Positions 10,155 to 62,015 are shown, numbered from the stretch's first letter. The stretch is DNA of 64,000 nt from Phallusia mammillata (GCA_965637545.1 OZ281494.1:34100001-34164000), one strand, 5' to 3'. Numbers and translations: made by a program. Notes: generated by a model from the letters alone, not told the origin.

Positions 10155-11581
10155 TTATGACTTTTTGGGCGACTTCAACCAAACTTGAACTTCTGAAATA
10201 AGTATTTCAAAATCCCGAGCTTGGTATTGCAAAGCAAATGGGATTTCCTCTGTCTGAATAAGTTCCATTTTGTCAGACAGAATCTCCTTGATAGTTTGTG
10301 AAGCTGTAACCGTCTGTCCGTCTTTGTCTAAAAATCCACCGATCCAGTTCTCCTAAATTTGTTAAGCACTTTGTTAACAACGTGATACACCAGTGTTTTA
10401 GCTACCTAATATTTTATAATGCATGTTGCAAGTTGCGAAATTAACATGGAATTTACGCAAATATTAGCAACAAAAGTTAGCATTTGTTTATTTTTAAAAT
10501 GAGGCGAAAATTGATTGAGTTGCCTAAATCTTAAATTGATGCTGGTTATTTTAAAAACCCAGTATGCAGTTTGCCGTTTCGTGCTTATTGTATTGCGGAG
10601 GCTACAGACTTGACTGAGTTTCACAGTTCATTCTTAACAAAGCTTATGACACAACCTTTGGTGTGAAATCTTCCAATGGGTCATGTGGAGACGCGATCAC
10701 ACAAATTCCATAATCATCCAAAAGGTTAGGAAGGTTCCTTAACACTTTTATTGGGTTCTCAAGACGCCCAATCACGTTGCTTATCACTACACAACCGAAC
10801 GTGCCAATGTCAGAAGGCAAAGCCTGGACATCTCCCAACTGAAAACTACACCTGCTTCGGTCCTAAACAAGTTATGTATGTTTAGTCAAATACATGATAA
10901 TGAAGTAAAGGTTCTTTTGAGCCTGCTATCACAACTCGCAAACAGATGCAAACTTACAATTGAATCTGGTATCTCAGCCAGCATTTCTTTTTTCAAGTCA
11001 CCCTCTTCACCAGCGTAAATTTTTGCTTTTCCGTTTTCCTTCAGTTCTTCACAAAACTCAATGAAGCCTTTGCAATAATCGAACCCGATAACTTCATCAA
11101 ATTTCGCTGCCAGGTTGAACGTGACACCACCAACGTTGCATCCAAGATCCAAAGCTCTTTTGTTGGTGCACGCCTGGGTACAAACATGGAAAACTGTATC
11201 AGCAATTAACAATACACGGAAAAATGTTCAATATCCGGGTCAACCCTAACGTTTGTTTTATGTAGACCAGCGATAACGGCACCAGAGTACATTGGAATCG
11301 AGGTAATCCTGCGCCTTTTTTATAAACGGTCCCTTTAAGGTTAATTTAATAAACGGTCTTTTCAAGGTTTGACGCACAAGGTTTAACACAAAACAAAGTT
11401 AAATAATAAAAATTACCCCGTCAACAGAATCAAGAGACAATTTAGACAGCTTCTCGACAAATTCGAAAGTTTCTGCTGGAATAAATTTGCTCCAACGCTT
11501 TTTGAGGTGGCGGGCGCCATAATGCATTCCTGTGAACAGGTTTAACCAGTCCATATGGTTTTTAACATAAAGAGACTCCAT
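10155..11581 (-). CDS. OvoA-Cterm-like SAM methyltransferase copy 1 (261 aa); complement join(11417..11581,10958..11173,10656..10862,10155..10352)
   Basis: Four exons of 165/216/207/198 nt with GT-AG phase-0 introns. Motifs HYG, RALDLGCNVGG (SAM motif I), DEVIGFD, EEGDL, GDVQALPSDIGTFGC, FTPKENWIGG, IPF..Q...R, VQVW. Confidence 0.9.
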
Positions 11582-12275
11582 GATCAACATCAATAACATA
11601 ACTACACAAAAACAAGTCGGATTCAGTTCCTCATTACTTACTAAAACAGATCGATATGTTTTGATAAAAAACTTCATGATGAAAATGAAATATTTACAAA
11701 ACACATTTTTCTCCTTTTTATTGCTGGTTCAACACCCATGGACAACGTCTTCACACATGCCCACCAGGTACTGAAGTTGTACAGCAGGATCAGGACACCT
11801 TTTACAATCTAATACCAATTACCGACATCTTACATGAAGTTTGGGGAGTCTTGTTTTAGCTTGGGAACAGCTATCAAACCAAAAAGTTAAAACAAGTCGC
11901 TGATCGAATGTATAAGTGCTTTGCACCAATGCGTGCCCTGGGTACCAATCTGCATCAGCCGAACTGCGAGAACATGAAAATAAAATCGTAATAATTCACA
12001 AAGACAACTTTTCATCAATCGTTCGCATCTATTTTTAAAAAATGCGACTACCAAATAATGCTTTCCTTGACTTGTGTCGCGTAATTCAACATAGACTGGT
12101 TTCCACTTGGTTCAGGGCTAATTCTTTTTCTAAAAGTTTTATCAAACATCTGCTACTCAAGCAGTTTCTTTTTTCTCACACGGCGCGGTTTCCTGGGAAT
12201 GCGACAAAACGATTTGTCTTGTCGTGCAAGACAAACTTCAGCTTTGTATTTCGAAATGAACTGCATGGTTTAGTG

Positions 12276-12573
12276 TTGGTAGTCAGCAACATAAAAACCT
12301 ACGGGTTCAAGATATTGCCTCAGGAAAATTCCGGTGAAAGTTTGTGCTCGCCGATGTTTACTTGAAGCAGATATGTTGATGTTAAACGGCAATGTCTGGT
12401 ACATGCTCAGTCGTTAATTAGCATTGTCATAGGCAAGACAAATCAAGCACACCTCGCTAAATGCGATTAGCAACACGCAACCGGACCGATACTTAATCCC
12501 ACATATCCAGGATTTTTACTGACTGTCAGGTGACTGTCAGGTGCTACGATGTTTTGTAAAATCGATCTGGCCC
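12276..12573 (+). mobile_element. Degenerate Ty3/Gypsy pol fragment (protease end to RT start)
   Basis: Frameshifted remnants ..KFVLADV..DVKRQCLVHAQS and PHIQDF..LSGATMFCKIDLA; homologous to 38570-38900. Confidence 0.7.
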
Positions 12574-13324
12574 TTGTGTGTTTTTCGACACAAACTTGAA
12601 GCACTATTCGGAACTTGGCTGCAACAGATCGGATGACAATTCTACAGGCTTTATCAGATGTCAATGTAACCATCCGTCGTCTGTGTTTAGCGTTCTTCTG
12701 AATCTGTTCCATTGCAGCACTTAGCAATAAAATCAACATTTTTGTCTCGATGTTGCTTGTTGTTTTGTTTTTTTATCAAAATACGCCTATATTATTTATT
12801 TGACATTTTTATTCACAATTTACAAGTTGTACAATGAATTTTAACTGTATATTATGATGCAAAATCTTTGTATTGGGGGCATTTCTTCCAAACTTGCACT
12901 TCTGATACAGCCAGTTCAAAATTCCGTTTTCTGTATTGATTCACAAACGGGATTTCTTGGACCTCAAGCAATTTCATCTTTTTGCACAAAATGTCTCTGA
13001 TAGTTTTCGAAGCAGTGATCTCAGTTCCGTCTTAGTTCAAATACCCCCCGAGCCAGTTCTCCTGTGACATAACTTTGATCATTATTATGCAACAATTGCA
13101 GTATTATGCAATAATTGCAAGAGTTCGACATGACGAATTAAACTTACGGATCCGGCCCGCGACGGGGTTTTGAGCGGCCCGCAGACAGTTTCAGGTCTTA
13201 CATGATAATGTGGCCCGCGGCCACAGTCTGCCGCAATCCCCCACTACTTGCTTACAGCGTCAAATTGTAGTTGTAACGGACAGTACGCTCCACAATAGCA
13301 AAAAAAATTCCCGCCGTTGCTACC

Positions 13325-13556
13325 ATTGTACCATAAGTCCATTGTTACGACATAACTGCCAGCCAAGTGTGGCCTGCTTTCACGGTTTCCTTTGTTTCCA
13401 CACGTATAGGCAGGGTTGCCATACCGTCCTTATTTCTAAGATTGTACCATAAGTCCATTGTTACGACATAACTGCCAGCCAAGTGTGGCCTGCTTTCACG
13501 GTTTCCTTTGTTTCCACACGTATAGGCAGGGTTGCCATACCGTCCTTATTTCTAAG
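13325..13556. repeat. 116-bp direct tandem duplication spanning the left junction of a hAT MITE
   Basis: 13325-13440 equals 13441-13556; single-copy in unit 2 (~19435-19550). Confidence 0.92.
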
Positions 13557-13908
13557 ATTTGTCCTTATTTTGAAGGGCTATGTCTTAGAAAAGTTCATTG
13601 TCCTTATTTCTAAGAAATGTCCTTATTTTTGACTTGAGTCCTTATTTTGTCTTATTTTCAACAATTATGAGTCAAATTCCTGCTACAAGTAAAAGTAAAC
13701 CTAGACCTGAGCTGTTGTAAGATGCACGAAACATTTTCTCCGGACAAGGGGTTGCTGGAACAGACTGTTTCTGGCCAAAATATAGCATATGAAATGTCAT
13801 GGCTGGTATAAATGCAAAGATTTGTTCAAAAACGCTTGTTTTTGTTACGTATGAAAATTTGATTTTTCGATTGTCCTTATTTTTGGTTTCAAGTCGATGG
13901 CAACCCTG
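13527..13908. mobile_element. hAT MITE (382 bp)
   Basis: TIRs cagggttgccat...atggcaaccctg; perfect TSD cgtatagg; internal gtccttatt repeats. Confidence 0.92.
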
Positions 13909-15075
13909 CGTATAGGCTATAGGCTAGTTAGTGTTTCAGCAGTATCTCTAAGTCTGTGGTGTATGCATTAAATTTGCTGTGGTGAATAATTTTATGTTAT
14001 ATCAGTTAGATTGTTTGGACTGTATTGTATTTGTGATGTTCTTGAATGTATTTGGTTTAGGTCAGGGTTCTTCAACGGGGGCGATATCAAATTTTACATT
14101 TTGTTAATTTGGTTTCATGGTTACAGATGTATCTGTCACTTCTATCAAACTAAAAAAATCTGTAATGTTAAAACCATATTCCGTTTTTCTGCGATTCAGA
14201 CCCACGTTACAGCTTGAGTGGCATGAAATCGTCGTTTATGAAATTCATTTAACAAATTAAGCGCTTGTGTTGTAGGAGTTGGGAACAAACTTACAAACAT
14301 TCTGCTATACCTTCACGGTTTGTTCAACGGCTCTCAAGTCATCGTAGTGTTTATTTTTTGCGATAGGGCGAATAGACAAGCGATCAGTTTTTTGCGCAGC
14401 ATAGAATTTCCATTGTCCAATAATACACACAAGTTCCCCTGAGCACACCGAGGACCACTGTGAGCAGCGTTAGATGTGCCACATACAAATTTAACCGTAG
14501 TATACCAAAAGTTCCGTTTTCGTCTAAAACTCAGATTGTGCGCATCTATAAAGTCATATATGTGATCACATCCATATGAGTTAAACTTGTCAAACTCTTG
14601 TATCGGTTCGTGCAAGTTTGTTAGTGCTTAGTCATAGTAAAAGCCTCAAACACGACGTGGGTCAGAAACGGTGCATGACGGCCGGATTTGACCAGATTTA
14701 AACTCACATGAAGGAGGTATTACAAACAGAAACAGAGCAAATGAAAAAGCGGGTCAGCAGTTGTTTGTCTAACTGACCGGAGGCAAAGTAAAAGGTTTAC
14801 GAGCTTCTTAAAGACGCGGTACGCGACGAACAGTAAGTTGTTGTTTACCACTTGTCGTGGCAAGGCGGGAGTTGTTTTTACAAGTGAAATAACTTTTAAG
14901 CAAGAAAATAATTTACAGTTGGGCTATACAAAGCATATCATATCTTTAGCTAGAGTTTCTTTAAATAGGTCGACAGATTGCTACTGCACATGGTGCTATG
15001 ATAAATTCTCTAAATGCTTTGAAAAATGAGCATGTTTCCATTTTGTGTACAGTGTCGTTATAAGTTAGTGGAAAA

Positions 15076-16535
15076 ATGGAGTCACTTTATGCTAAACAAC
15101 ACACAGGCTGGCTAAACCAGTATGCTGGAATGCACTACGGTGCCCGTTACCTTAAAAAGCGTTGGAGCAAATTTCTTCCAGCAGAAAATTTCGAATTTAT
15201 CGAGAAACTTTCAAAGATGTCAATTGATGCTGTTGATGAGGTAACTGGACACAAGAAAAGTTTGTTCAATTTATTTATTTGCTTAGTCATTAGTCATTAT
15301 TTTTTACCCAGGCGTGCACCAACAAAAGAGCTTTAGATCTTGGATGCAATGTTGGTGGTATCACGTTCAACCTGGCAGCTAAATTTGATGAGGTTGTTGG
15401 GTTCGATTGTTCCGAAGGTTTCATTGAACTCTGTGAGGAATTGAAGAAAAACGGAAAAGCGACAATTTACTCCTGTGAAGAGGGAGAACTTGAAAATGAA
15501 ATGATGGCTGAGATACCAGATTCCATAGTAAGTTGATTTTGTCTGTCAAGAAGAGGTTCAATTCTTTTTATTCGTCTCTTGCTTGGAATGAAATATTAAT
15601 CAACCAATTTTAAATAATACAAAACTTTAAAAAAAAAAATTCTGCACAAAGAAATTGCGACTACCAGGGTTGGTACATCTTCGAAAACCGTTTCCCATCA
15701 ACCTTTTAAACCCAATGAGTTTTGTTTTTCTTCCCTTAGGACCGAAGCAAGTGCAGTTTTATGTTGGGAGATGCTCATGCTTTGCCTTCTGACATTGGAA
15801 CGTTCGGTTGTGTGGTCATAAGCAATGTACTCGATCGCCTCGAGAACCCGAAGAAAGTTTTAAAAACAATTCCTGACCTTTTGGCCGATCGTGGTATCTG
15901 TGTGATTGCGTCTCCTCATTGCTCTTTGGAACCATTTACACCAAAGGTAAGGCTTAGTTCGAAGTAAACAGCAAAGCCAGATAAAGCCAAAGAATAAGAT
16001 ATATATTACTTATGAAAGATGACCTACTTAAAAAGCAATCAATAATTCGCATAAATTCTGTTTTATAACCCATTTAAACAAAGAGAGATGAAAAGTGGCA
16101 TCTGAATGAGTGATTTATTACTTACACAAACTGATCAGTATTACGTGCCTGTTCTATAAAAGTAGACGCATGTCACAGTGTGTCGTATAAAAATCACTTG
16201 AGGTCGAACCGTAATGACTTTTTCATCAATCACAAATTTCTGACAAAGTGCGCACACTCATTTTGCTGAGTCGAATTGTTGACCAAAACCAATCAAGCCT
16301 TACTTGACCCGCAATAATGTTACTTATTAACGGGTAACAAATTTAGGAGAACTGGCTCGGTGGATATTTGAACAAAGACGGACAGACGGTTACAGCATCA
16401 CAAACTATCAAGGAGATTCTGTCTGACAAAATGGAACTTATTCAGACAGAGGAAATCCCATTTGCATTGCAATACCGGATTCGCAACTTTGAATTGGCTA
16501 TTTCTGAAGTTCAAGTTTGGAAAAAATACCCATAA
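15076..16535 (+). CDS. OvoA-Cterm-like methyltransferase copy 2 (258 aa); join(15076..15240,15312..15527,15740..15946,16347..16535)
   Basis: Same exon architecture, open frame, canonical splice sites; ALDLGCNVGG, NVLDRLENP, TPKENWLGG. Confidence 0.92.
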
Positions 16536-18384
16536 AATAATTAACAACCCTGCAAATATAGGCTACAACTTAATCGGCTATTGTACAATCTAATTTACAG
16601 AAGTCGACTATTCTTGTGGATTTTGTTAATAAAAAAACAAGCACACAACTTGTTTAAAAGTGACAAATAAGAAAATTTACATATTTTCGATATTGCGATG
16701 TAACTACCATGCGAAGAACTTACCAAGGTGTTAAAACCGTGTGACACCATGTGATTAAATTACCCATTAAAACAAGCGCGCGCTTTGATTACCATGTGAT
16801 GAAATTATTCTTTAAATTAGGGTTAATGCTTTACGGGTCTTTATACAGATAGTTATTTATGGTTTATCAGTGTCATTTTGAATTCACTTACTGACTATTC
16901 GGTAAAAAGTTCGTGTAATATTTTAGTGGTCTATGGAAAAAGTTGAATTGGCCACACTGGCTGGATAAACAGTTTACAAACCATATGTTCGAAAAGTTGA
17001 CTTATCAAATAAAAACAAGAGTCCCATAGTGTTTGGACTGTAACGAATACCCTTTATTGCAGTCACTTCAACAATCGCTGTTGTCGTTATAGTGTTTCAG
17101 CGCATTCTAAAAGTTGTCTTTGCACACTGGCGTGAATGGAGTTTATTTCGCTTGGTAAAACAAACTGTAGCAGCACTATTAAGCTAAAATGCCACCAAGC
17201 CGGAAATAGACGTGAGTTGAGACGTTATAAAGCGCGACAAAACTACGGTCACAAACAGTTAGAAGCGCGCTGCAGCTGTGGTCACTACATAGCTTTATAT
17301 GAAGCAGGAAATCGAGAGTGAGGTTGGCGCGTTAGGAAATCAAGAATGGCGATGACAACAAATTTTGATAAAATGTATTATCTACCTACAAGTTATTGAT
17401 TTTTTTAGGTGTTGTTATTATTTTATTATTTTCAATTACAGTTTTTCTCTGAAGTAAACATAGGTTGAATGGTACGGTTTTATCGAAGCAATAACAAATG
17501 TTTTACAGCAAGGAAACGCAAAGTTGTATAAACCCAAAATTCATTTTTTGAAGCAGGTTCAATTTATAACTCTTCACCAAAAGGCCGAATGTAATGTAGC
17601 TGGAGATTATTTTAGATTAATGTTGCAGTCGGGTACACGGTTATTTATCTGAGATGAAACAAAGTGTAATAATCTGTACAAAAACACTATACAAAAACAA
17701 GTCGGATTCAGTTCCTCATTACTTACTAAAACAGATCGATATGTTTTGATAAAAAACTTCATGATGAAAATGAAATATTTACAAAACACATTTTTCTCCT
17801 TTTTATTGCTGGCTCAACACCCATGGACAACGTCTTCACACATGCCCACCAGGTACTGAAGTTGTACAGCAGGATCAGGACACCTTTTACAATCTAATAC
17901 CAATTACCGACATCTTACATGAAGTTTGGGGAGTCTTGTTTCAGCTTGGGAAACAGCTATCAAACCAAAAAGTTAAAACAAGTCGCTGATCGAATGTATA
18001 AGTGCTTTGCACCAATGCGTGCCCTAGGTACCAATCTGCATCAGCCGAACTGCGAGAACATGAAAATAAAATCGTAATAATTCACAAAGACAACTTTTCA
18101 TCAATCGTTCGCATCTATTTTTAAAAAATGCGACTACCAAATAATGCTTTCCTTGACTTGTGTCGCGTAATTCAACATAGACTGGTTTCCACTTGGTTCA
18201 GGGCTAATTCTTTTTCTAGAAGTTATTTCTTCTGCACTTTGAATGTTTTATCAAACATCTGCTACTCAAGCAGTTTCTTTTTTCTCACACGGCGCGGTTT
18301 CCTGGGAATGCGACAAAACGATTTGTCTTGTCGTGCAAGACAAACTTCAGCTTTGTATTTCGAAATGAACTGCATGGTTTAGTG

Positions 18385-18682
18385 TTGGTAGTCAGCAACA
18401 TAAAAACCTACGGGTTCAAGATATTGCCTCAGGAAAATTCCGGTGAAAGTTTGTGCTCGCCGATGTTTACTTGAAGCAGATATGTTGATGTTAAACGGCA
18501 ATGTCTGGTACATGCTCAGTCGTTAATTAGCATTGTCATAGGCAAGACAAACCAAGCACACCTCGCTAAATGCGATTAGCAACACGCAACCGGACCGATA
18601 CTTAATCCCACATATCCAGGATTTTTACTGACTGTCAGGTGACTGTCAGGTGCTACGATGTTTTGTAAAATCGATCTGGCCC
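18385..18682 (+). mobile_element. Gypsy pol fragment (duplicate of 12276-12573)
   Basis: Same sequence carried in duplication unit 2. Confidence 0.7.
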
Positions 18683-19520
18683 TTGTGTGTTTTTCGACAC
18701 AAACTTGAAGCACTATTCGGAACTTGGCTGCAACAGATCGGATGACAATTCTACAGGCTTTATCAGATGTCAATGTAACCATCCGTCGTCTGTGTTTAGC
18801 GTTCTTCTGAATCTGTTGCATTGCAGCACTTAGCAATAAAATCAACATTTTTGTCTCGATGTTGCTTGTTGTTTTTTTTTTTTATCAAAATAGGCCTATA
18901 TTATTTATTTGACATTTTTATTCACAATTTACAAGTTGTACAATGAATTTTAACTGTATATTATGATGCAAAATCTTTGTATTGGGGGCATTTCTTCCAA
19001 ACTTGCACTTCTGATACAGCCAGTTCAAAATTCCGTTTTCTGTATTGATTCACAAACGGGATTTCTTGGACCTCAAGCAATTTCATCTTTTTGCACAAAA
19101 TGTCTCTGATAGTTTTCGAAGCAGTGATCTCAGTTCCGTCTTAGTTCAAATACCCCCCGAGCCAGTTCTCCTGTGACATAACTTTGATCATTATTATGCA
19201 ACAATTGCAGTATTATGCAATAATTGCAAGAGTTCGACATGACGAATTAAACTTACGGATCCGGCCCGCGACGGGGTTTTGAGCGGCCCGCAGACAGTTT
19301 CAGGTCTTACATGATAATGTGGCCCGCGGCCACAGTCTGCCGCAATCCCCCACTACTTGCTTACAGCGTCAAATTGTAGTTGTAACGGACAGTACGCTCC
19401 ACAATAGCAAACAAAAATTCCCGCCGTTGCTACCATTGTACCATAAGTCCATTGTTACGACATAACTGCCAGCCAAGTGTGGCCTGCTTTCACGGTTTCC
19501 TTTGTTTCCACACGTATAGG

Positions 19521-19902
19521 CAGGGTTGCCATACCGTCCTTATTTCTAAGATTTATCCTTATTTTGAAGGGCTATGTCTTAGAAAAGTTCATTGTCCTTA
19601 TTTCTAAGAAATGTCCTTATTTTTGACTTGAGTCCTTATTTTGTCTTATTTTCAACAATTATGAGTCAAATTCCTGCTACAAGTAAAAGTAAACCTAGAC
19701 CTGAGCTGTTGTAAGATGCACGAAACATTTTCTCCGGACAAGGGGTTGCTGGAACAGACTGTTTCTGGCCAAAATATAGCATATGATATGTCATGGCTGG
19801 TATAAATGCAAAGATTTGTTCAAAAACGCTTGTTTTTGTTTCGTATGAAAATTTGATTTTTCGATTGTCCTTATTTTTGGTTTCAAGTCGATGGCAACCC
19901 TG
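19521..19902. mobile_element. hAT MITE (duplicate of 13527-13908)
   Basis: Same TIRs and TSD cgtatagg. Confidence 0.92.
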
Positions 19903-21069
19903 CGTATAGGCTATAGGCTAGTTAGTGTTTCAGCAGTATCTCTAAGTCTGTGGTGTATGCATTAAATTTGCTGTGGTGAATAATTTTATGTTATATCAGT
20001 TAGATTGTTTGGACTGTATTGTATTTGTGATGTTCTTGAATGTATTTGGTTTAGGTCAGGGTTCTTCAACGGGGGCGATATCAAATTTTACATTTTGTTA
20101 ATTTGGTTTCATGGTTACAGATGTATCTGTCACTTCTATCAAACTAAAAAAATCTGTAATGTTAAAACCATATTCCGTTTTTCTGCGATTCAGACCCACG
20201 TTACAGCTTGTGTGGCATGAAATCGTCGTTTATGAAATTCATTTAACAAATTAAACGCTTGTGTTGTAGGAGTTGGGAACAAACTTACAAACATTCTGCT
20301 ATACCTTCACGGTTTGTTCAACGGCTCTCAAGTCATCGTAGTGTTTATTTTTTGCGATAGGGCGAATACACAAGCGATCAGTTTTTTGCGCAGCATAGAA
20401 TTTCCATTGTCCAATAATACACACAAGTTCCCCTGAGCACACCGAGGACCACTGTGAGCAGCGTTAGATGTGCCACATACAAATTTAACCGTAGTATACC
20501 AAAAGTTCCGTTTTCGTCTAAAACTCAGATTGTGCGCATCTATAAAGTCATATATGTGATCACATCCATATGAGTTAAACTTGTCAAACTCTTGTATCGG
20601 TTCGTGCAAGTTTGTTAGTGCTTAGTCACAGTAAAAGCCTCAAACACGACGTGGGTCAGAAACGGTGCATGACGGCCGGATTTGACCAGATTTAAACTCA
20701 CATGAAGGAGGTATTACAAACAGAAACAGAGCAAATGAAAAAGCGGGTCAGCAGTTGTTTGTCTAACTGACCGGAGGCAAAGTAAAAGGTTTACGACCTT
20801 CTTAAAGACGCGGTACGCGACGAACAGTAAGTTGTTGTTCACCACTTGTCGTGGCAAGGCGGGAGTTGTTTTTACAAGTGAAATAACTTTTAAGCAAGAA
20901 AATAATTTACAGTTGGGCTATACAAAGCATATCATATCTTTAGCTAGAGTTTCTTTAAATAGGTCGACAGATTGCTACTGCACATGGTGCTATGATAAAT
21001 TCTCTAAATGCTTTGAAAAATGAGCATGTTTCCATTTTGTGTACAGTGTCGTTATAAGTTAATGGAAAA

Positions 21070-22533
21070 ATGGAGTCACTTTATGCTAAACAACACACAG
21101 GCTGGCTAAACCAGTATGCTGGAATGCACTACGGTGCCCGTTACCTTAAAAAGCGTTGGAGCAAATTTCTTCCAGCAGAAAATTTCGAATTTATCGAGAA
21201 ACTTTCAAAGATGTTAATTGATGCTGTTGATGAGGTAACTGGACACAAGAAAAGTTTGTTCAATTTATTTATTTGCTTAGTCATTAGTCATTATTTTTTA
21301 CCCAGGCGTGCACCAACAAAAGAGCTTTAGATCTTGGATGCAATGTTGGTGGTATCACGTTCAACCTGGCAGCTAAATTTGATGAGGTTGTTGGGTTCGA
21401 TTGTTCCGAAGGTTTCATTGAACTCTGCGAGGAATTGAAGAAAAACGGAAAAGCGACAATTTACTCCTGTGAAGAGGGAGAACTTGAAAATGAAATGATG
21501 GCTGAGATACCAGATTCCATAGTAAGTTGATTTTGTCTGTCAAGCAGAGGTTCAATTCTTTTTATTCGTCTCTTGCTTGGAATGAAATATTAATCAACCA
21601 ATTTTAAATAATACAAAACTTTTTAAAAAAAATTCTGCACAAAGAAATTGCGACTACCAGGGTTGGTACATCTTCGAAAACCGTTTCCCATCAACCTTTT
21701 AAACCCAATGAGTTTTGTTTTTCTTCCCTTAGGACCGAAGCAAGTGCAGTTTTATGTTGGGAGATGCTCATGTTTTGCCTTCTGACATTGGAACGTTCGG
21801 TTGTGTGGTCATAAGCAATGTACTCGATCGCCTCGAGAACCCGAAGAAAGTTTTAAAAACAATTCCTGACCTTTTGGCCGATCGTGGTATCTGTGTGATT
21901 GCGTCTCCTCATTGCTCTTTGGAACCATTTACACCAAAGGTAAGGCTTAGTTCGAAGTAAACAGCAAAGCCAGATAAAGCCAAAGAATAAGATATATATT
22001 ACTTATGAAAGATGACCTACTTAAAAAGCAATCAATAATTCGCATAAATTCTGTTTTATAACCCATTTAAACAAAGAGAGATGAAAAGTGGCATCTGAAT
22101 GAGTGATTTATTACTTACAAACTGGTCAGTATTACGTACTTGTGGTCAGTAGGTAAAGTAAACGCATGTCACAGTGTGTCGTGTAAACAGGTCACTTGAG
22201 GTCGAACCGTAATGACTTTTTCATCAATCACAAATTTCTGACAAAGTGCGCACACTCATTTTGCTGAGTCGAATTGTTGACCAAAACCACTCAAGCCTTA
22301 CTTGACCCGCAATAATGTTACTTATTAACGGGTAACAAATTTAGGAGAACTGGCTCGGTGGATATTTGAACAAAGACGGACAGACGGTTACAGCATCACA
22401 AACTATCAAGGAGATTCTGTCTGACAAAATGGAACTTATTCAGACAGAGGAAATCCCATTTGCATTGCAATACCGGATTCGCAACTTTGAATTGGCTATT
22501 TCTGAAGTTCAAGTTTGGAAAAAATACCCATAA
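21070..22533 (+). CDS. OvoA-Cterm-like methyltransferase copy 3 (258 aa); join(21070..21234,21306..21521,21733..21939,22345..22533)
   Basis: Almost identical to copy 2; by eye differs by S>L (MSID/MLID), A>V (DAHAL/DAHVL) and one silent change. Confidence 0.92.
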
Positions 22534-51833: not shown

Positions 51834-52408
51834 GTGGTTTAAATCAAAAATAAACTTTAGTTTATAACCACACTGTCCACACACTAGAATACCTTTGTTT
51901 AACTGGGAAAAGCAAGCCTTTGGGAACGTAGTGCATTCCAGTATGTAGGTTTAACCAGGCTATATGTTTTATGGCACAAAGCAACTTTTCCGTTTACTAT
52001 AACAGCTGCATCAAGTGAAAACACGTTTTTTCATGTTCACCAAAAAATAACACGATGAGTTTTAGGCCAAACAAAAAAACAAATCCGCAATTGTTTTTAA
52101 CGTCCAGCTTTTACATTCAGAAAATTCCTAAAAGGGGCCACAAAACAAACAAAGATAAACTAAAAACCACTGCTCGAAAAACGTTTTGAAGCGATTTCGG
52201 CTAGATCTCGATTCGCACATTCTTATTAATGCTAGTTATGTATATGACGTAAAAAACTGCATTTGGTTCAATGGTGAAACAATGTTTTCGGCGTTGCGAA
52301 ACACGTATGTTGATGTGAAACATTGTATTTTGATGTAAAACACTTCCTTGGTCGTAGCGGATCAAGATGCTAACAGGTGACAATTCATGCCTTACTTGTT
52401 CTGAATGC

Positions 52409-53031: not shown

Positions 53032-55730
53032 ATGGAGTCGCTTTATATCAGGAAACATATGATATGGCTGAACATGTTCACAGGAATGCATTACGGTGCC
53101 CGCTACCTTCAAAAACGTTGGAGCAAATTTATTCCAGAAGAAAATTTTGAATTTGTCGAAAAGTTTTCCAAGTTGACGATTGATTCATTTGATGAGGTAG
53201 TTACGAATTGAACATTTTTCACTTTAAAACATACTCTTTTTAACAAATTACACATCCTAATTCCTCCCCAATAGTGTAAATAGTAGATACTAAACCAGGG
53301 GTGGAGAACCGTTTGATTCATAAAGGCCACCCAACGTGTTGTCGACACTCGTGTAGGTCGCATCGAATATTTTTCAGGTTTAGAACAGTGGTTTATAAAT
53401 ATTTTTGTTTACATAATGCTCGTTTTGCAATCTTTCCCAATAGCACGTTCCAAGCTGAGTGCAATGATATACCTATATAAACTCCCCACTATATTTCCAC
53501 TACAACATTCAAGATTTATTTCACCTACAGATTCGATTTTTACGCATATCAATTCTAAGAGAAGTTTGTTACATCGGAGACAAATCTAAAATATTGCATT
53601 ATGCGCAAACAATTGGTTAATTATCACATAAATAAGATTGTTGAGTCATAAGCTTTTATAGTAGTCCCACGAAAATAACTAGTGGTAAAACAACTGGTCT
53701 AGAACCAATCAAATAGCAACCTAAGAAAGGAAATAAAGGTGGATAAAACTAGCATTTCTACATATTTCTTTTCGGCTGATGCACTGTGCTATATCAAGGT
53801 CTTTAAAGAGATTTTGACAGCGAAGGCCGCACTTACTGCACAAAAGGGCCACAGGTTCTCCACCTTTGTGCTAAACCGTACAAGATCATTTAAAAATGGG
53901 CCATTATCAACTTCACAGGTTATATCCTCAGAGCTAATGCGTCTATTTACAAACCACAAGTAGGCTACAAATTAAAGTAAAATACTTCCCGGTTGGGGCC
54001 ACTTCTTTAGCATATCTAAGCTTATTGATAGTTGCCCACTTTACTTTTGTAATTCAGGCGTGCACCAACAAAAGAGCTTTGGACGTTGGCTGTTGTGTTG
54101 GTGGTATCACGTTCAACCTAGCCCAAAAATTTGATGAAGTTGTCGGTATCGACTATTCCAGAGGTTTCCTTGAGGTTTGTGAGGAATTGAAGAAAAACGG
54201 GAAATCGAAAATTTACTTGTGCGAAGAGGGCGACCTGGAAAGAGAAATGATGGCTGAGATACCAGATTCAATTGTAAGTCTGATTAAAAATATAGGGACT
54301 GTATTAACGTAAACCAGTGATCGGCAATCTTTCATTACCTGGGCCAAAACATTCTTAACAAGCATGCGCGAGAAAAAAATTTACCGAAAGCAAGTTTCAT
54401 CTCTACAAACACATTTGAAACGCGAGTTTAATTTAGCTACTTCTTCTCTTCAAATTTAAGTGTTATACACTTCACGTCAAAATTTACGTCGCTAAAAAAG
54501 TAACCAAGCGTGATAAGGAAAGAGGTTATAAAAAACTTTGATTTCTAATAATTGATTCTTTAGAACCGTAGCAGATGCACTTTTATGTGGGGAGATGTCC
54601 ATGCTTTGCCTTCTGACCTGGGAAAGTTCGGTTGTGTTGTCATAAGCAACGTAATTGACCGTCTCGAAAACCCTATTAAAGTGTTAAAGAGCCTTTCCGA
54701 CCTCGTGGCTGATAACGGCGTCTGTGTGGTCGCTGATGGTCATTGTGTCCTAGAAGCGTTTACACCAAAGGTATTTCGCACTATAAAGAGGACTTGCATA
54801 TTTGCAACTTATGTGTTTCGCGTGCTTTCAGTGGATATTCACATTCATTAATGTTTAGCTTGGGGCTGTATGTTCCTGCATAGGCTCCGAGTGGGCGGTG
54901 GCGGGGTGGCGCCGCCACCTTGGGTTTGTAAAGCACGGTGGCGGTCACCGTGATTTTTTTGGTTGTTTATAGCGGTATCGTACGTACATCGTCAAAACTA
55001 GCGTGCTGGCGAAAAAGCAACAAGAAACTGCAACCTTGTTCATGACGCCAAATTGTTGCCATTGTTGTGTGCAATTCGATCGTGCTGTAATAAATGTTTT
55101 TTTAGCTGATACAAAGCAGCAACAACGTGACGAAACATTTTTTAAACGCCGCTAAACCAATTATAAACGTTACACAGCAAAGTGGCCCCAATAAATATTA
55201 CTGCAAAACCGTTTTTTAACAAATTTGGACAAAAGTTGCACTCCATCGGAAGTTTGCTGGGCTTTGTGTTTGAGCACGCATTAGTGACGTGACGTCACAC
55301 AAAATGACGTCATACTTAAAGTCCGCCACTTTGCATTTTTGTAAAACTCGGCGCCTATGTGTTCTTGTATGTTTGTCAAAACGTTATGTTTTTACATTAT
55401 ATTTGGCTTGTCTGTTTCTTACCAAAGTAACTTATTGTTATTTTTATGTTACCTAGATTAATACTCACATTTTTGCTTGGGGTTTAATGACAAATTAGAA
55501 AAGTTATGTAAATAGTTTTACAATTTTAGGAGAACTGGCTTGGTGGATATGTGAACCAAGATGGAAAAGTAGTTGAATCAACAAATTCTATAAAGGAGAT
55601 TCTGTCTGATCAAATGGAACTCATTCAGACTGTTGATATTCCATTTGTGGAACAAGTTCAAGGCCGTGTGTTTCAACTGTATATTGCAGAAGTTCAAGTC
55701 TGGAAAAAGTTGCCAAAACCAATTAAATAA
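53032..55730 (+). CDS. OvoA-Cterm-like methyltransferase copy 11 (262 aa); join(53032..53196,54058..54273,54564..54770,55530..55730)
   Basis: Open frame, canonical sites; ALDVGCCVGG, ADGHCVLEAFTPK. Confidence 0.92.
53296..53868. mobile_element. hAT (Buster-like) MITE in copy 11 intron 1
   Basis: TIRs caggggtggagaacc...ggttctccacctttg; TSD tactaaac/tgctaaac. Confidence 0.85.
54879..55359. mobile_element. hAT-type MITE in copy 11 intron 3
   Basis: TIRs cataggctccgagt...actcggcgcctatg; TSD tgttcctg/tgttcttg. Confidence 0.85.
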
Positions 55731-57216: not shown

Positions 57217-58842
57217 ATGGAGTCGCTTTATACTAGGAAACATATGATATGGCTGAACCAATTTACAGGAATGCATTACGGTTTCCGCTACCTTCAAAAA
57301 CGTTGGAGCAAATTTATTCCAGAAGAAAATTTTGAATTTGTCGAGAAGTTTTCAAAGTTGTCCATTGATTCATTTGATGAGGTAGTTAAGAGTTAAACTC
57401 TTTTACTTTAACTTGTGTTATCCGCCACTTATATAAGTGGCACCTAATTCAGCGGCATGTTAGGCAATTTACACAAAATTGGACATAAGCTACCTGTCTT
57501 TAATGTATTCATGTATAGATAATGTGTGTATAAGGGTATGTTGTTCCACATAAACGCTTCAGTGCTGATCCCTATATAATGCTCTTAAATACATATTCAT
57601 AGTTGCCTATTTTACTTTAATTTTCACTCAGGCGTGCACCAACAAAAGAGCTTTGGATCTTGGATGCAATGTTGGCGGAGTCACGTTCAAGTTGGCATCG
57701 AAATTTGATGAAGTTATCGGTATCGACTATTCCAAAGGTTTCATTGAGGTTTGTGAGCAACTAAAGAAAAACGGGAAAGCCCCAATATACCCGTGCGAAG
57801 AGGGCGACCTGGATACAGAAATGATGGTTGAGATAACAGATTCAATTGTAAGTTGATTAGGTTTTCTTCTTGGTGGGCTACACAAACCACCAAACAAAAC
57901 AGCGTTAATTGCTCTTGTGCAAACATACACCACATATTACAAATTATTAACTCTTTAACGAACATGTAATCCCCACAAAGATATTGTTGTTCGTAAAGCT
58001 GCCATCCACACAATGCTCACCACAATCTTAATCGGTCTAGGTGTTTTTCTAGTTGTTAGTGACATAATTTTGATTCTAATTAATTAAGTATTTAGGACCG
58101 AAGCAGGTGCAGATTTTTGTGGGGAGATGCCCATACTTTGCCTTCTGACATTGGAAAGTTTGGTTGTGTGGTTGTAGCCAACCTGACTGACCGTCTCGAA
58201 AACCCCAAGAAGATTTTAAAAAGCCTTCCTGACCTCGTGGCTGATAACGGTATCTGCGTGGTCGCGGAAGCTCACGTTTACATGGAAGCTTTTACACCAA
58301 AGGTATTTCTCACTATAAAAGTGGCTTTCCTGTATGTGCGCAAGTTATGTATACTACATGCTTTTAATGGATATTCACATTAATAACTTGCTAGGCTCAG
58401 GAACTGCATACTCATAAACTAATATTTGCGTGTAAAAGGGCAAAAATTGGTGAATCAAAATAACATTTACCAAAAACTTAACTTACAGATGGACACATAC
58501 TGTGTTCAAAAACATTATTTGAAAAAAGACAAAAAATTTAAAGTCACAAGTTATTTGTATGTCGCAAGGTTGATACTCACAGTTTAATTTTGGCTTTGCT
58601 GACAAATTAAAAAAGTTATGCAAACTTGTTTACAATTTCAGGAGAACTGGCTTGGTGGATATGTGGATCAAGATGGACAAGTAGTTGAATCAACAAATTC
58701 TATAAAGAAGATTCTGTCTGATCAAATGGAACTCATTCAGACTGTTGATATTCCATTTGTGCAACAGGATCAGGGCCGTGTATTTCAACTTGCTATTCCA
58801 GAAGTCCAAGTCTGGAAAAAGTTGCCAAAAACAATAAAATAG
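57217..58842 (+). CDS. OvoA-Cterm-like methyltransferase copy 12 (262 aa); join(57217..57381,57632..57847,58096..58302,58642..58842)
   Basis: Open frame, canonical sites; ANLTDRLENP, AEAHVYMEAFTPK. Confidence 0.92.
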
Positions 58843-61472
58843 CCTTTTTATTTTCCATTGAAAAATGTAAATTGATAATATAGATTAGTAATTCACAATA
58901 TTATTATGAGTCTTGTAACTGAAAATCAAATATGCAATTTATGGTTTTGATAAAACAAAAAGTTTAACACAAAAAAAAACAAGATTAGTATCATTACCGT
59001 AACAGGCAAACTATAACTTGGAAAATGTTTCTGATTACAATGACAAACTGCAAACACATTTGTTTTTGCACCAGAGCTTGTTTTTGCGCCACAAAATATT
59101 TGGGCCAAAATTGTATGCAACTTTTGCAAGTGTCAATTTCCATGGTCATAAGTTTGTGACCGGTATATCAGTTTCTTGTAGCAGTGGTACCTAGAGTATC
59201 AATTCATTTATAAATCCCTTTTTTGCAAAATATATTTGTTGTCAAAATAAGTGAGTTGTTGTGCCCAAGGCTACTGGTGTTAAAAGTGAGAGTAAATAAC
59301 TTAGTAAGCTAAGGCTGAAATTAGGCGACTGGCGATCATTTTAAATGGTGCATTGTTAAGGGACACAAAAAAGGTGAACAACTTTATGGTCCATGCATAC
59401 ATTAAAGTTCTCCCAAACATAATTGAACAGTTGTTCTTTGATATATTCCTGAATGATTTTATCCAAGTGGCTTTTGGTCTGTTCAGTTACAGTTGTTGTA
59501 TAGTTAAAGTGGGCATGGTGTTTACTCAATGTGTTTCAATTCCTACTGTAATGTGTTTTCAATTCCTAAGTTCTATGATTATGTTCAATATTCATCTAAG
59601 TCAGATAAAGCAAAAAAAAATATTTACAGTCCCGTTTAAAAGTAAGTGATTCTGCCATACCACATTGAAAGTAATCTGTAATAGCTCATTAGTACCTAAC
59701 TGACAGACTGCTAATTTTAGAAAAACTTACCCAGTGGATATTTCAATGAAGAGTGACAAAAGGTTACAACAATTAAACTGAAGATTTATACTCTTTCGGG
59801 TGAAATGTAACTAATTGAGAAAGTGAATATTTCATTTGTACTTCAAGACCAATTCCGCACTTTTTAAGTGTCCATCGCAAAAGTTCAAGCCTGAAAAAAC
59901 GCAAAAATTAAAGTGACAAACTTGACAACATGCAAGTGAAACATATATATAGCATTAAAGACATTGGCTTCAATTTTGTCATATATTGCAAAAACCTTTT
60001 TAAGCAAAAAATATACCTATTTAATAAATTGTTTAAAAAAGTCCAAAATTAGGTTTATTAAAGTGATATAAACTGACACAAATATGGCCGCTGGTTAAGC
60101 AGCTTGAAATTTAGGACCCAAAAGTATGTGGTGGGGACTTACAATCAAGTGTGGGTTAGACACATAATAACAGCTTTTGATAAACATATTCATTACATAC
60201 AAGCTCTCTGGCAGTTTTACTTACAAGTGCATTGCTGAGTAGATTGAATTTTGATCATAAAAGGGTTAGGTTTAGTGTTTGCGAATAGTCTATTAGACAC
60301 AGTATTTATTTTAGTAGATTAGACGGTAACGATAATAATCAAACAACCACAACTGTAACAGTGTACTTTCATAGACATACCCATTCTTGTGTCTGAAAAC
60401 CATAAACTTGTGCACCAGTTGCTTTGTATTGGGATACCAAGGAGTTTATTCTGATGGAATTTATCACTTTGCTTTTCAGTGTGACAACCAAGCATATTTA
60501 TGTGTACAATAGTCACCATACAAGACCACAGAGAATAGCCCTTTTAGATGCCTTTATAAAAAAGAAAAGAAGGTGACAACATAACATGTTTAGAATTGCA
60601 TTTGTTCAAGAGTTTTGTGTAGAGTTCTGATAAGTAATGGGATCACCATATCTCACAGAGCACTTTGCAAATAAACAACACAAATTCATTTTTAATGCAT
60701 GCATAGTGACAAATGGCAACTCTTCTTGGTCAGAGAAATATTCTAGGTAATTAGATGTTCCAATTAAAAGCAAGAAACAGCATTTAAACTACAGTTGCTA
60801 GTAAAGTGTAAACAATTGTCAGTGGTTTTAAACAGTCTTATAATATCAAACATATTAAAGTTAAAGGTGTTTGAATCCACTTTAACCAAAACATTTGTGG
60901 TTTCGTTTTCCTTCACACATCCTCCATGCGTTTACAAAACATAGCAGTCAGCACCAACAAAGCTATCTTAGCTGGATTTAATGCAGTTTTACATACAATT
61001 GGAATGAAACTTTCCCTTGCTACTTTCTATTGGCTATTACTAGATAATATACCACAACATTTATTCCATGCAGTTTACACATTGAGTAATAAACTTTTCT
61101 TATCAAAAACTATTTTGCTTGTTTTTTCACAGTATTTAATCAAACCAAATTTTTTTTTCTGTCACAAAGATAAATAAACCTACTAATATTAATGTGAACT
61201 AAATGTTACCTTACTAATTCATTTTTACCCAAATCAACGATATTAGGATGACACAAACGCCAGACACCGCATTCCATTTCCACTCCCGCAAAAAAAAACG
61301 AAAACTGTCTGATTTCACAAAAATGGTTACAGACTGGCGGATAAAAACATCGATTAGATTTTTTAGATTTGTCATTCATTTCGCAATTTCATTATAATGC
61401 TTCTTTATTCAAACAAATTTTGCACGACAAAACAAGAATCAAGTTCATAATTTACTGTGTACTATTTAATTT

Positions 61473-62015
61473 TTAATTTGTTTGAACAATTTTTGAAGAC
61501 TTCTTCCAAATTTGGACTTCTGAAATATTCAGCTCAAAGTCACGATACCGGTATTGCATCGCAAATGGAATATCAACTGTCTGAATGAATTCCATTTGAT
61601 CAGACAGAATCTCCTTGATAGTTGTTGAAGCTTTAACAGCCTGTCCATCTTTGTTTGAATATCCACCAACCCAGTTCGCCTAAAATCACCTAAGGCTTGT
61701 TAATGCCTGCGTTTACAATTCACTCTTTTTAGGAGTTTATAACTAAAGCGAATTTACAGAAACGTACTTACAACTTTTAAGGCAAATATTTCAGCAAATG
61801 TTTTTTATTCTACCAAACAATTTGATTTTTTGTACTAGTACCACTACTTTATTGGCTACAGCAAAAAGTTAATTGTTGATTTTATTTGACCAAAGTAACA
61901 CTGGGGTTGTGAAACTTGAGGCAACATTCACCTCAATCAAATCAATTGCACATAATTGCCTTTGGTGTAAACTCTTCTGAAGAATAGTGGGGAGAAGCGA
62001 TTACGCAGATTCCGT
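61473..62015 (-). pseudogene. Methyltransferase copy 13: intact exon 4 (61473..61679) and 3' end of exon 3 (61960..62015), interrupted by an LTR element
   Basis: Exon 4 reads ANWVGGYSNKDG...IPFAMQYRYRDFELNISEVQIWKK. The exon 3 remnant ..GICVIASPHYSSEEFTPK stops abruptly at the LTR start. The intron 3 donor is GC. Confidence 0.88.

Follow-up and report, generated by a model that had tools for sequence, protein, structure and literature searches.

The tandem methyltransferase array of Phallusia mammillata is best explained as a family derived from an OvoM-type gene whose copies have diverged functionally at residues of the acceptor side or dimer lid, a reading that we hold as a whole at a probability of about 0.55 and in which positive selection is not demonstrated. 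Two short protein segments are at issue, segment A (alignment columns 185-189) and segment B (columns 236-247, the 12 residues after PF), which on average change at about the pace of unconstrained sequence. The array copies are most likely active methyltransferases with putative altered, copy-specific acceptor or dimer-lid surfaces.

About 15 copies are spread across C1:34.110-34.175 Mb, and 13 of them, one broken, lie within the 64,000-nucleotide stretch of DNA analyzed here (the window), where the motif [LMS]E.FTPK occurs 13 times. Copies 1-12 are intact four-exon genes encoding 258-264 aa, in which every intron is in phase 0 and bounded by GT/AG splice sites, and reading frames and splice sites are undamaged in every array copy but copy 13. 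In that copy an insertion of ~2.4 kb splits exon 3; exons 1 and 2, and 51 codons from the start of exon 3, follow ~2.4 kb onward, past the right end of the window (L023:458-1221). Copies 2 and 3 share 99% identity and reflect a recent ~6 kb duplication. Exons 2 and 4 of copy 6 are covered by contigs from probable RNA runs. Outside the array, two intact copies and one pseudogene represent dispersed members of the derived family.

Table 1 Positions of the methyltransferase copies and relics, counted from the first nucleotide of the window.
Feature	Position	Strand	Segment A	Segment B	Description
Copy 1	10155-11581	-	10677-10691 SPHDP	10200-10235	intact, 4 exons, 261 aa
Copy 2	15076-16535	+	15911-15925 SPHCS	16464-16499	intact, 258 aa
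Copy 3	21070-22533	+	21904-21918 SPHCS	22462-22497	intact
Copy 4	24593-26596	+	26145-26159 SPNNF	26513-26548	intact, 262 aa
Copy 5	28449-29793	+	29288-29302 DPYTF	29704-29739	intact, 264 aa
Copy 6	31818-33143	+	32752-32766 SPHYS	33063-33098	intact, 259 aa
Copy 7	35423-37400	-	35922-35936 SPHDP	35468-35503	intact, 261 aa
Copy 8	40193-41769	-	40688-40702 DVHCF	40241-40276	intact, 262 aa
Copy 9	44037-45526	+	44790-44804 SPHYS	45446-45481	intact, 261 aa
Copy 10	47272-50223	+	49192-49206 DPYGF	50140-50175	intact, 262 aa
Copy 11	53032-55730	+	54735-54749 DGHCV	55647-55682	intact, 262 aa
Copy 12	57217-58842	+	58267-58281 EAHVY	58759-58794	intact, 262 aa
Copy 13, 3' part only	61500-62013	-	61981-61995 SPHYS	61527-61562	exon 3 tail (61960-62013) and exon 4
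Exon-4 relic	12876-13061	-			lone pseudo-exon, in-frame stop
Exon-4 relic, second copy	18985-19170	-			same relic, within the 6 kb duplication
Exon-1 relic	51886-51981	-			weak, E = 0.001

Judged by sequence comparison, the array genes are stand-alone relatives of OvoM/OvsM and of the OvoA C-terminal domain, i.e., of the 5-thiohistidine N-pi-methyltransferases. Exons 2 and 3 match the Pfam families Methyltransf_31/25/11, and the motifs LDLGCxVGG, G[FIL]D, GD and FGCVV.SN, conserved throughout the array and including motif I (D-x-G-C-x-V-G) and the acidic residue that closes beta2, identify class I SAM methyltransferases. Scored singly, exons 2-4 match NCBIfam TIGR04345 (putative 4-mercaptohistidine N1-methyltransferase) at 67.9, 53.8 and 41.9 bits (model positions 41-242), to be read against a curated cut-off of 170 bits that was set for the whole protein and not for single exons; exon 1 gave no TIGR04345 match in this single-exon profile search. 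Exons 2-4 also match the PDB chains of OvoM (9bxl) and OvsM (9bxh), with E = 6e-11 to 7e-10, and that of OvoATh2 (8khq), and the model of a canonical chordate homolog superposes on OvsM/OvoM with a TM score of 0.93 and an rmsd of 1.8 A. In the tree, the 17 derived copies group as a single clade (100% support) whose stem measures 0.58 substitutions per site; within it, copy 5 is the earliest-branching array copy and retains a near-canonical segment A. The canonical gene persists at C1:7.82 Mb, and its introns fall where those of the array genes do. Array and dispersed copies all derive from one canonical gene of the animal stand-alone OvoM type. An OvoA-type sulfoxide synthase is also present, as TIGR04344 matches (model positions 9-443) at C4:16.044-16.048 Mb and C1:22.719-22.724 Mb; both loci are unlinked to the array, and no methyltransferase match adjoins either of them.

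All 13 segment A strings and all 13 segment B strings listed in the original prediction were found in the sequence and belong to the copies named, with Q and R the only fixed residues of segment B. The flanks, described there as near-invariant, are indeed so (GICV[IV], FTPK|ENWLGG, IPF, SEVQVWKK), and the exon 3 proteins of copies 8, 10 and 11, singled out as almost identical otherwise, share 89-94% identity once segment A is set aside, while 2-4 of the 5 residues in that segment differ between them. Across 15 non-redundant derived copies, mean entropy was 1.69 bits in segment A and 1.60 in segment B, compared with 0.67 elsewhere. Segment B ranked first among 245 twelve-residue windows (P = 0.0025 for any window of shuffled columns), and among five-residue windows lying outside B, segment A came first (P = 0.001 for that fixed window, 0.28 for any window).

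The same positions are highly conserved among canonical enzymes. In 28 canonical proteins from bacteria to sharks, segments A and B carry the near-invariant motifs SP[YF][TS]W and IRE[HT]xRK[FY]Q, and the segments correspond to the two non-SAM signature motifs of the family. Of 38 columns conserved across these proteins, 27 are invariant in the array and 6 variable, 5 of the latter falling inside the two segments. The full SP[YF][TS]W motif is absent from the array, the nearest versions being those of copies 5, 10 and 14 (SPHTF), and IRE[HT]xRK[FY]Q is absent from all 17 derived copies, in which only the second Arg is kept. A fixed Gln takes the place of the first Arg (canonical R238), Tyr, Asp or Val that of Glu, and any of eight residues that of Lys. 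Some array copies may be inactive, since the motif-IV Asn is missing from copy 5 and other conserved positions are altered in a few copies.

An AlphaFold model of the canonical chordate homolog (rather than of an array copy; pLDDT 95-98 around the segments) bore out the expected placement of both segments, with A at the end of beta5 and in the next loop, and B running from the last part of beta6 through the turn into beta7. The further proposal that they shape the acceptor pocket holds in part. Because the segments coincide with the two non-SAM signature motifs, they could plausibly act at the acceptor site, and fold topology together with conservation suggests that they adjoin this site; the pocket would not be their sole structural role, as in a solved OvoA and in a predicted dimer of a canonical chordate protein they also lie side by side in the two-fold dimer interface. 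The OvoATh2 crystal structure shows dimerization through strand T690-Q700 (columns 240-250), R692-D682', H696-H696' and Y638-W650 (PMC10696552). In the homodimer predicted for the canonical shark protein, interface residues 227-230, 277 and 281-291 correspond to columns 186-189, 236 and 240-250. This prediction scored 0.77 (best of 3 controls, 0.00), although similar complexes have been solved and the predictor may simply be reproducing them; its runs shared at least 82% of contacts, with partner pLDDT of at least 86. The benchmark mark for this score was reached by 21 of 30 solved one-chain pairs and 0 of 23 solved single chains, and on eukaryotes by 17 of 29 pairs (7/16 for animals; 1/7 without an older solved relative) and 0 of 30 single chains, counts that apply only approximately, a small molecule having been included. 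Columns 243 and 247, the two most variable, pair across the two-fold axis in the homodimer model, and the salt-bridge pair R242 / D-or-E232 is present in all copies.

Codon models separated the segments clearly from the remaining protein, with omega of 0.75-0.85 for the former and 0.24-0.25 for the latter, a fit preferred to a single omega by 2dlnL = 89, and 71% of sites were placed at omega 0.14 in the site model. The segment value was indistinguishable from 1 (2dlnL = 2.5-3.2), and simulated neutrality gave a median estimate of 0.86, compared with the 0.80-0.85 observed. No site class was significantly above omega 1, leaving the predicted diversifying selection on substrate specificity unsupported. 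Comparison of M1a with M2a found no positively selected class (2dlnL = 0.00-0.05); M7 versus M8, the comparison originally proposed, was borderline (p about 0.05), and M8a versus M8 gave p = 0.19-0.46. The extra M8 class (omega about 1.4) had its highest posteriors at columns 188, 241, 243 and 247, all within the segments, and FEL returned a single nominal site (column 247, beta > alpha, p = 0.03) together with purifying selection at columns 186, 187, 189 and 239. A BUSTED-like test gave 2dlnL = 2.8, and 0 when the local synonymous rate was free. Power was ample, as omega = 2 was detected in 60/60 simulations and omega = 1.5 in 39/60. Subclades behaved differently: segment A had an omega of 0 among c6/c9/c13/c15 (p = 0.001-0.01), compared with 1.2-2.2 among c8/c10/c11/c12. 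With the segment unchanged in one of these subclades and changing rapidly in the other, the pattern is not pure drift. Under a constant synonymous rate, clade-wise omega reached 1.9 for segment B (clade X, p = 0.017) and 2.2 for segment A (clade Y, p = 0.047), but neither value survived correction for six tests, and both were gone when the local synonymous rate was free.

Synonymous change is itself uneven along the gene. Its rate is 2.1-2.4-fold higher in the segments than in the rest (2dlnL = 25-26, p about 3e-7), pS is 0.68 in the segments and 0.45 elsewhere, and alpha reaches 3.3 at the codons of the invariant Q238 and R242, whereas synonymous rates are low beside exon junctions. With the local synonymous rate free, segment omega falls to 0.36-0.37. 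The nonsynonymous rate is close to that of other fast positions, with beta of 0.78 in the segments and 0.73 at the 17 most variable sites outside them. Columns 160-171 combine alpha of 1.8-2.2 with beta of only 0.23-0.30, i.e., a high synonymous rate without amino-acid variability. The recombination screen yielded discordant trees from the two gene halves, and non-sister copies share significantly long identical tracts, three of which end at column 236, the start of segment B. Gene-conversion tracts homogenize the flanks, which sharpens the contrast between segments and flanks.

Had the founder simply lost the ancestral substrate, both motifs could now be drifting surface loops without functional meaning; the near-neutral segment omega, its closeness to the simulated neutral median and the similar beta at other variable sites all fit such relaxation. 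However, four copies share SPHYS despite synonymous differences among them (neutrality rejected, p = 0.001 and 0.01), segment B has two invariant residues, Q238 and R242, at its center, four segment columns are under purifying selection by FEL, and the variable positions are clustered, not scattered, which leaves relaxation alone an unlikely account. Less likely still is that paralogs diverged at the homodimer interface so that each copy pairs with itself and paralog interference is avoided. The OvoATh2 contacts, the predicted shark interface (subject to the caveat above), the pairing of columns 243 and 247 across the axis and the universal R242 salt bridge are consistent with this idea, but the canonical residues are near-invariant from bacteria to sharks, more than is usual for mere interface residues, columns 243 and 247 have no obvious complementary pairing across copies when the alignment is inspected by eye, the homodimer prediction concerns a canonical homolog instead of an array copy, and EEG[DE]L, the partner loop, does not vary.

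Pervasive diversifying selection driving residue turnover at both segments, as originally envisaged, is again less probable: the four top M8 sites, the nominal signal at column 247, the uncorrected clade values and the fact that the changes hit canonical motif positions speak for it, whereas the M2a, M8a and BUSTED-like results and the ample power speak against it, and the recombination present inflates such tests and does not hide a signal. We give least credence to a rate artefact, in which the contrast would stem mainly from faster local mutation or deeper coalescence in the segments, along with conversion and splice-site constraint flattening the flanks, and not from protein selection. The elevated synonymous rate and pS, the alpha at the invariant codons, the tracts halting at the edge of segment B and the low rates beside exon junctions would all be expected, yet columns 160-171 have an equally high synonymous rate with amino acids that are not variable, segment omega with free alpha still exceeds the 0.25 found elsewhere, and the replaced positions are family motif residues. 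In the preferred reading of functional divergence from an OvoM-type ancestor, the array founder would have lost three hairpin residues (Arg, Glu and Lys) along the long stem branch, probably together with 5-thiohistidine recognition. Both stretches may then have changed among the copies at an average pace close to neutral, with bursts in some subclades and purifying selection on new sequence in others, while the SAM site and remaining fold would have stayed under purifying selection and ongoing conversion between copies would keep the flanks alike.

The known activity of OvsM and of the OvoA methyltransferase domain is N-pi methylation of 5-selenohistidine or 5-thiohistidine. CARNMT1 (carnosine N-methyltransferase) likewise methylates the histidine imidazole N-pi. 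It is the next-best structural neighbor of the canonical chordate model (PDB 5YF0-5YF2; Foldseek E about 6e-10), but is a larger protein of another family with 13-14% identity. Bacterial OvoM/OvsM (PDB 9BXL-9BXN, 9BXH-9BXK) resemble the array proteins in size (~250-260 aa) and class I SAM methyltransferase fold, and share with them the N-terminal HYG, motif I, FTPK, WLGG, IPF and the hairpin second Arg. In contrast, the array lacks SP[YF][TS]W (near-canonical in copies 5, 10 and 14) and, in all copies, the Arg, Glu and Lys of IRE[HT]xRK, and consists of intron-containing animal genes in a 15-copy tandem array. The OvoA C-terminal domain (OvoATh2, PDB 8KHQ; sea-urchin OvoA) is homologous to the array proteins, and the OvoATh2 dimer contacts map onto segment B and the surroundings of segment A; unlike in the OvoA fusion, the methyltransferase here is a gene separate from the sulfoxide synthase. 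Loss of the hairpin Arg, Glu and Lys after duplication, with the second Arg kept, is also seen in diverged tandem paralogs elsewhere, on L030 (an animal contig) and in a protein of the bivalve Solemya velum (P0009), which are single diverged copies without a large array; their origin appears to be independent, although their placement in the tree is weakly supported. In the tree, the array is sister to the canonical animal stand-alone form, comprising the C1:7.82 Mb copy (L027) and the shark cluster P0030 (e.g., XP_078065302.1), whose 'uncharacterized protein' has an N-terminal membrane anchor that the array copies lack. The canonical animal form has 39-46% identity to the array over exons 2-4, is single-copy and, unlike the array, keeps both SPYT[FW] and I[RQ]ETARKHQW.

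All strings quoted in the original prediction for two variable segments of the array proteins proved correct, and the motif it named, [LMS]E.FTPK, was found 13 times in the window by motif search. Segment A (columns 185-189) comprises the five residues before this motif and segment B (columns 236-247) the 12 residues after PF. Across 15 non-redundant derived copies, mean column entropy was 1.69 bits in segment A and 1.60 in segment B, compared with 0.67 for the rest. Among 12-residue windows segment B varies most (P = 0.0025 for any window reaching such variability after shuffling of columns), and segment A is the highest 5-residue window outside B (P = 0.001 as a fixed window, 0.28 for any window). 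Exon-level alignment to solved chains places segment A where canonical proteins have SPYTW/L and segment B where they have [VL]IRETxRK[FY]QH[ST], both motifs being near-invariant among 28 canonical proteins. Within exons 2-4, 38 columns are conserved in canonical proteins; 27 are still invariant in the array and six are variable, five of which lie within the segments (S185, P186, W189, E239 and K243), while canonical R238 has become a fixed Gln. The pattern is real and neatly localized, and it occurs in a lineage-specific expansion of an OvoM-derived methyltransferase.

The family was identified from single exons or database proteins, which were used for all search, fold and complex jobs, with joined coding sequences reserved for alignments, tree building and codon models. 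Generic SAM-methyltransferase Pfam families are matched by exons 2 and 3, and exons 2, 3 and 4, scored singly, match NCBIfam TIGR04345, the OvoA C-terminal "putative 4-mercaptohistidine N1-methyltransferase", at 67.9, 53.8 and 41.9 bits. By sequence, the closest chains of known structure are OvsM (9bxh), OvoM (9bxl) and the bifunctional OvoATh2 (8khq). OvsM performs N-pi methylation of 5-selenohistidine (bioRxiv 10.1101/2024.04.10.588772) and the OvoA domain N-pi methylation of 5-thiohistidine (PMC12631010).

Using tblastn with the exon peptides of one copy and inspection of junctions, array genes were found to consist of four exons with introns all in phase 0 (junctions, marked by a slash: GAG/GTA, CAG/GCG, ATA/GTAAGT, TAG/GAC, AAG/GTA and TAG/GAG). 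Twelve copies in the window are intact (258-264 aa), accompanied by two solitary exon-4 relics that carry an in-frame stop and by a single weak relic of exon 1. Copy 13 is broken within exon 3; the window holds only the tail of that exon and exon 4, the first exons lying ~2.4 kb further, beyond the window end. The break is flanked on both sides by the same two codons (Gly plus Val/Ile), and its insert contains no open reading frame with a recognizable family. In the 240 Mb genome the array continues past the window with two extra intact copies (c14 and c15), and no related sequence was found in the 10 kb preceding the window or the 7 kb following c15. A tandem duplicate with 97-100% identity points either to segmental duplication in the very recent past or to a duplication in the assembly. 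In exon 3 of copy 5, Cys replaces a near-invariant Asn after beta4 (SN to SC), and copies 6, 9, 13 and 15 read HCI where the others have DRL, replacing a near-invariant Arg (the instances in 13 and 15 lie outside the window); judged from these substitutions, catalysis may be altered or lost in some copies. Contigs from four probable RNA runs cover copy 5 at exon 4 and copy 6 at exons 2 and 4, along with intronic and intergenic pieces and no reported splice joint, and a deep contig matches exon 3 of a paralog.

Locations of the array, its tracts and its relatives (columns refer to the array alignment)
Feature	Copies or type	Location
Window		C1:34100001-34164000
End of array	c14 and c15 beyond window	C1:34.1747 Mb
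Tandem duplicate, ~6.0-6.1 kb	copy 2/copy 3 plus exon-4 relic	window 12133-16477 and 18242-22475
Exon with Asn to Cys change	copy 5, exon 3	window 29117-29323
Insert, ~2.4 kb	copy 13, exon 3	window 62014-64000 plus L023:1-457 (stretch past the window's right end)
Conversion-like tract	c4 with c10/c11	columns 213-231
Conversion-like tract	c1-c2	columns 214-236
Conversion-like tract	c10-c11	columns 210-236
Conversion-like tract	c8-c12	columns 213-236
Conversion-like tract	c9-c15	columns 140-176
Dispersed gene L027	canonical copy	C1:7.82 Mb
Other derived copies		C1:33.70 Mb; C3:17.81 Mb
Pseudogene		C3:13.12 Mb
OvoA-type sulfoxide synthase locus		C4:16.04 Mb (C4:16044408-16048321)
OvoA-type sulfoxide synthase locus		C1:22.72 Mb (C1:22719363-22724400)
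Gene pair on L030 (ENA contig of another animal)	canonical OvoM-type gene adjoining diverged tandem paralog	L030:8630-9553 and 10031-11073
Weak-match clusters, C2		C2:6.235-6.245 Mb; C2:26.81-26.83 Mb
Weak-match clusters, C3, C5, C6		C3:29.03-29.05 Mb; C5:8.37 Mb; C5:18.02 Mb; C6:18.29-18.30 Mb

Structural placement was assessed on an AlphaFold model of the shark canonical protein (mean pLDDT 89.5, 95-98 at the segment regions; array column = shark residue - 41), which superimposes on OvsM/OvoM with a TM of 0.93 and an rmsd of 1.8 A. In this model beta5 (216-226) is followed by a loop, and beta6 and beta7 span 266-279 and 285-297. Segment A corresponds to the final residue of beta5 and the following loop, and segment B to the beta6-beta7 turn with the adjoining end of beta6 and start of beta7, so the predicted post-beta5 loop and beta6-beta7 hairpin were correctly placed. 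In the topology of class I methyltransferases, this side of the sheet is the acceptor-binding side.

The same elements recur in a dimer interface. OvoATh2 dimerizes via several elements, including strand T690-Q700, a salt bridge R692-D682', a contact H696-H696' and the stretch Y638-W650 (PMC10696552). By our own mapping from the exon alignment, T690-Q700 corresponds to columns 240-250 with H696 at column 246, the salt bridge to invariant R242 and conserved D/E232, and Y638-W650 to segment A plus what comes after. Homodimer prediction for shark residues 45-300 with SAM scored 0.77 (best control 0.00), with at least 82% of contacts agreeing between runs and a partner pLDDT of at least 86, although similar complexes have been solved and may by themselves account for this pass. 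The mark was reached by 21/30 proteins solved as same-chain pairs and 0/23 solved as single chains, and in eukaryotes by 17/29 paired (animals 7/16; 1/7 without an older solved relative) and 0/30 single proteins, counts that are only rough because a small molecule rode along. The predicted interface involves shark residues 153-156, 227-230, 240, 242-245, 251, 253-254, 277 and 281-291, i.e., columns 186-189, 236 and 240-250, together with the partner's invariant EEG[DE]L loop. The predicted interface columns cover both segments, which would thus serve as interface elements as well as active-site-side elements, two roles that are not separable here. In the predicted dimer the beta7 strands pair over the axis with columns 243 and 247 facing each other; no pattern of covariation between these two columns was seen by eye across copies.

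The original prediction had attributed this variability to diversifying selection, for which codon models gave no support at any level. The models were custom-written, with an M0 likelihood identical to that of IQ-TREE (-6296.34). The gene halves gave discordant trees (c1 grouped with c7 and c16, a further derived copy, at 100% in exons 3-4 and not in exons 1-2), and partition trees were therefore used. M1a against M2a gave 2dlnL = 0.00-0.05 in every partition, with 71% of sites at omega 0.14 and 29% at omega 1. The proposed M7/M8 comparison reached p ~0.05, but the proper test, M8a against M8, gave p = 0.19-0.46; the extra M8 class held 5-6% of sites at omega ~1.4, led by four segment columns (188, 241, 243 and 247) and by column 117. 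A partition model estimated omega at 0.75-0.81 in segment A, 0.83-0.85 in segment B and 0.24-0.25 elsewhere, outperforming a single omega by 2dlnL = 89, and the segment value did not differ from 1 (2dlnL = 2.5-3.2). FEL flagged column 247 as its single nominal site (p = 0.03) and placed columns 186, 187, 189, 238, 239 and 242 under purifying selection, and a BUSTED-like test on the segments gave 2dlnL = 2.8 when the synonymous rate was shared and 0 when it was free. In power simulations with omega set at 15 variable segment sites, omega = 2 was significant in 60/60 runs and omega = 1.5 in 39/60, while omega = 1 yielded a median estimate of 0.86, matching the observed value. Given these null tests and ample power, pervasive positive selection at omega ~2 or more is excluded, and diversifying selection in the strict sense is not demonstrated by the array data.

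What sets the segments apart is also visible at synonymous sites. Nei-Gojobori pN/pS was 0.54 in the segments vs 0.32 elsewhere with pS raised too, and in the likelihood models that replaced it the synonymous rate within columns 185-189 and 236-247 was 2.1-2.4x that of the rest (2dlnL = 25-26, p ~3e-7), lowering segment omega to 0.36-0.37 when this rate was free. A by-product of choosing variable sites was ruled out, as the 17 most variable exon-3/4 sites outside the segments had alpha 0.92 and beta 0.73 vs alpha 2.13 and beta 0.78 in the segments; the codons of invariant Q238 and R242 had alpha 3.3. The elevated synonymous rate might stem from escape from gene conversion, from a mutational hot spot or from multi-nucleotide changes. 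A GENECONV-style permutation found that some non-sister copies share long identical tracts; all the pairs in the table except c9-c15 reach the test floor (p = 0.0005, Bonferroni level 0.0004), and three tracts stop at column 236, where segment B starts. Gene conversion thus flattens the flanks, leaving the segments as older or faster-diverging islands, and the tract ends could reflect either selection against conversion or divergence itself blocking conversion.

Clade-specific freezing shows that new segment sequences come under constraint, and the pattern is not pure drift. In c6/c9/c13/c15, all four copies share SPHYS as segment A although they differ at synonymous positions (omega = 0), and neutrality was rejected (p = 0.001 with a shared synonymous rate, p = 0.01 with a free rate). 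In c8/c10/c11/c12, omega for segment A was 2.2 with the shared rate (p = 0.047) and 1.2 with the free rate (not significant), and segment B showed the opposite tendency between these clades; the contrasts are post hoc and omega values > 1 fail correction. In terms of order, the stem branch of the array saw the loss of hairpin Arg, Glu and Lys; segment A, still close to canonical in the basal copies 5, 10 and 14, diversified afterwards, a sequence of changes that fits a functional shift. Overall, the pattern is best read as functional divergence at the acceptor/dimer-lid motifs of the family, combining average neutrality, clade-specific constraint and a gene-conversion background.

A bolder proposal, which we consider unlikely (roughly one chance in eight), is that the array's proteins are homodimeric N-methyltransferases of small molecules that together form a combinatorial toolkit. 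A lid made of the post-beta5 loop and the tip of the beta6-beta7 hairpin from both subunits would determine which acceptor is used, and selection would preserve differences between copies against continuing gene conversion, which would explain raised dS and dN islands with tract ends at their edges. The enzymes would act on a set of imidazole or thiohistidine-derived metabolites, and their reactions might include the N-alpha-methylation step from ovothiol A to ovothiols B and C, for which the methyltransferases are still unidentified (PMC12631010, PMC8623360). Apart from this proposal, the array offers candidate enzymes for unknown methylation steps on metabolites derived from histidine in marine animals, and it is a natural variant series for probing whether the motifs act in acceptor choice, dimer pairing or both. 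As a lesson in method, a hypervariable patch amid invariant flanks in old tandem paralogs is possible at an average omega of ~1, the contrast being helped by gene conversion and local rate variation.

The array can be set against a canonical gene in the same genome. The dispersed copy L027 keeps the bacterial motifs (SPYTF...FTPK and FLIRETARKHQW) and shares its intron positions with the array genes; the 3.4 kb upstream of it did not reveal its exon 1. The genome also has two loci of OvoA-type sulfoxide synthase, and none of 94 methyltransferase matches genome-wide lies beside either, so the methyltransferase module is detached in this genome. A library of 1.84 billion proteins contained no close full-length relative of the array genes (best matches 50-55% identity over exon 2, many of them exon-sized fragments); the closest full-length relatives were of canonical type, including a 300-aa membrane-anchored "uncharacterized protein" of sharks (P0030 cluster). 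Weak matches to the same methyltransferase model (E = 1e-7 to 1e-3) formed other clusters of uninterrupted frames of ~280-350 aa on C2, C3, C5 and C6, which look like additional, unrelated methyltransferase arrays. In a protein tree the 17 derived ascidian copies form a single clade (100% support, long stem) within an animal stand-alone group, with copy 5 (near-canonical DPYTF) as its first branch. Literature searches turned up no previous report of this array, nor of OvoA-type methyltransferases that are detached or expanded in tunicates, and the lineage-specific OvoM-derived expansion is previously undescribed.

Among known systems, CARNMT1 (carnosine N-methyltransferase), which likewise methylates histidine imidazole, is the next structural neighbor of the shark model in the PDB after OvsM, OvoM and OvoA. 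The paralog on L030 and a protein of the bivalve Solemya velum (P0009) have lost the hairpin Arg, Glu and Lys and retained the second Arg, in parallel to the ascidian array. Sharks have a stand-alone, membrane-anchored methyltransferase of the same form, which together with the separate synthase loci suggests that OvoA is split in these chordates. Animal ovothiol biosynthesis is usually described as the work of a single fused OvoA enzyme; here, as in sharks, the methyltransferase module is a separate gene, and in one ascidian it founded a family of 17 or more members that kept the SAM site yet rewrote precisely the two motifs that are invariant across canonical enzymes.
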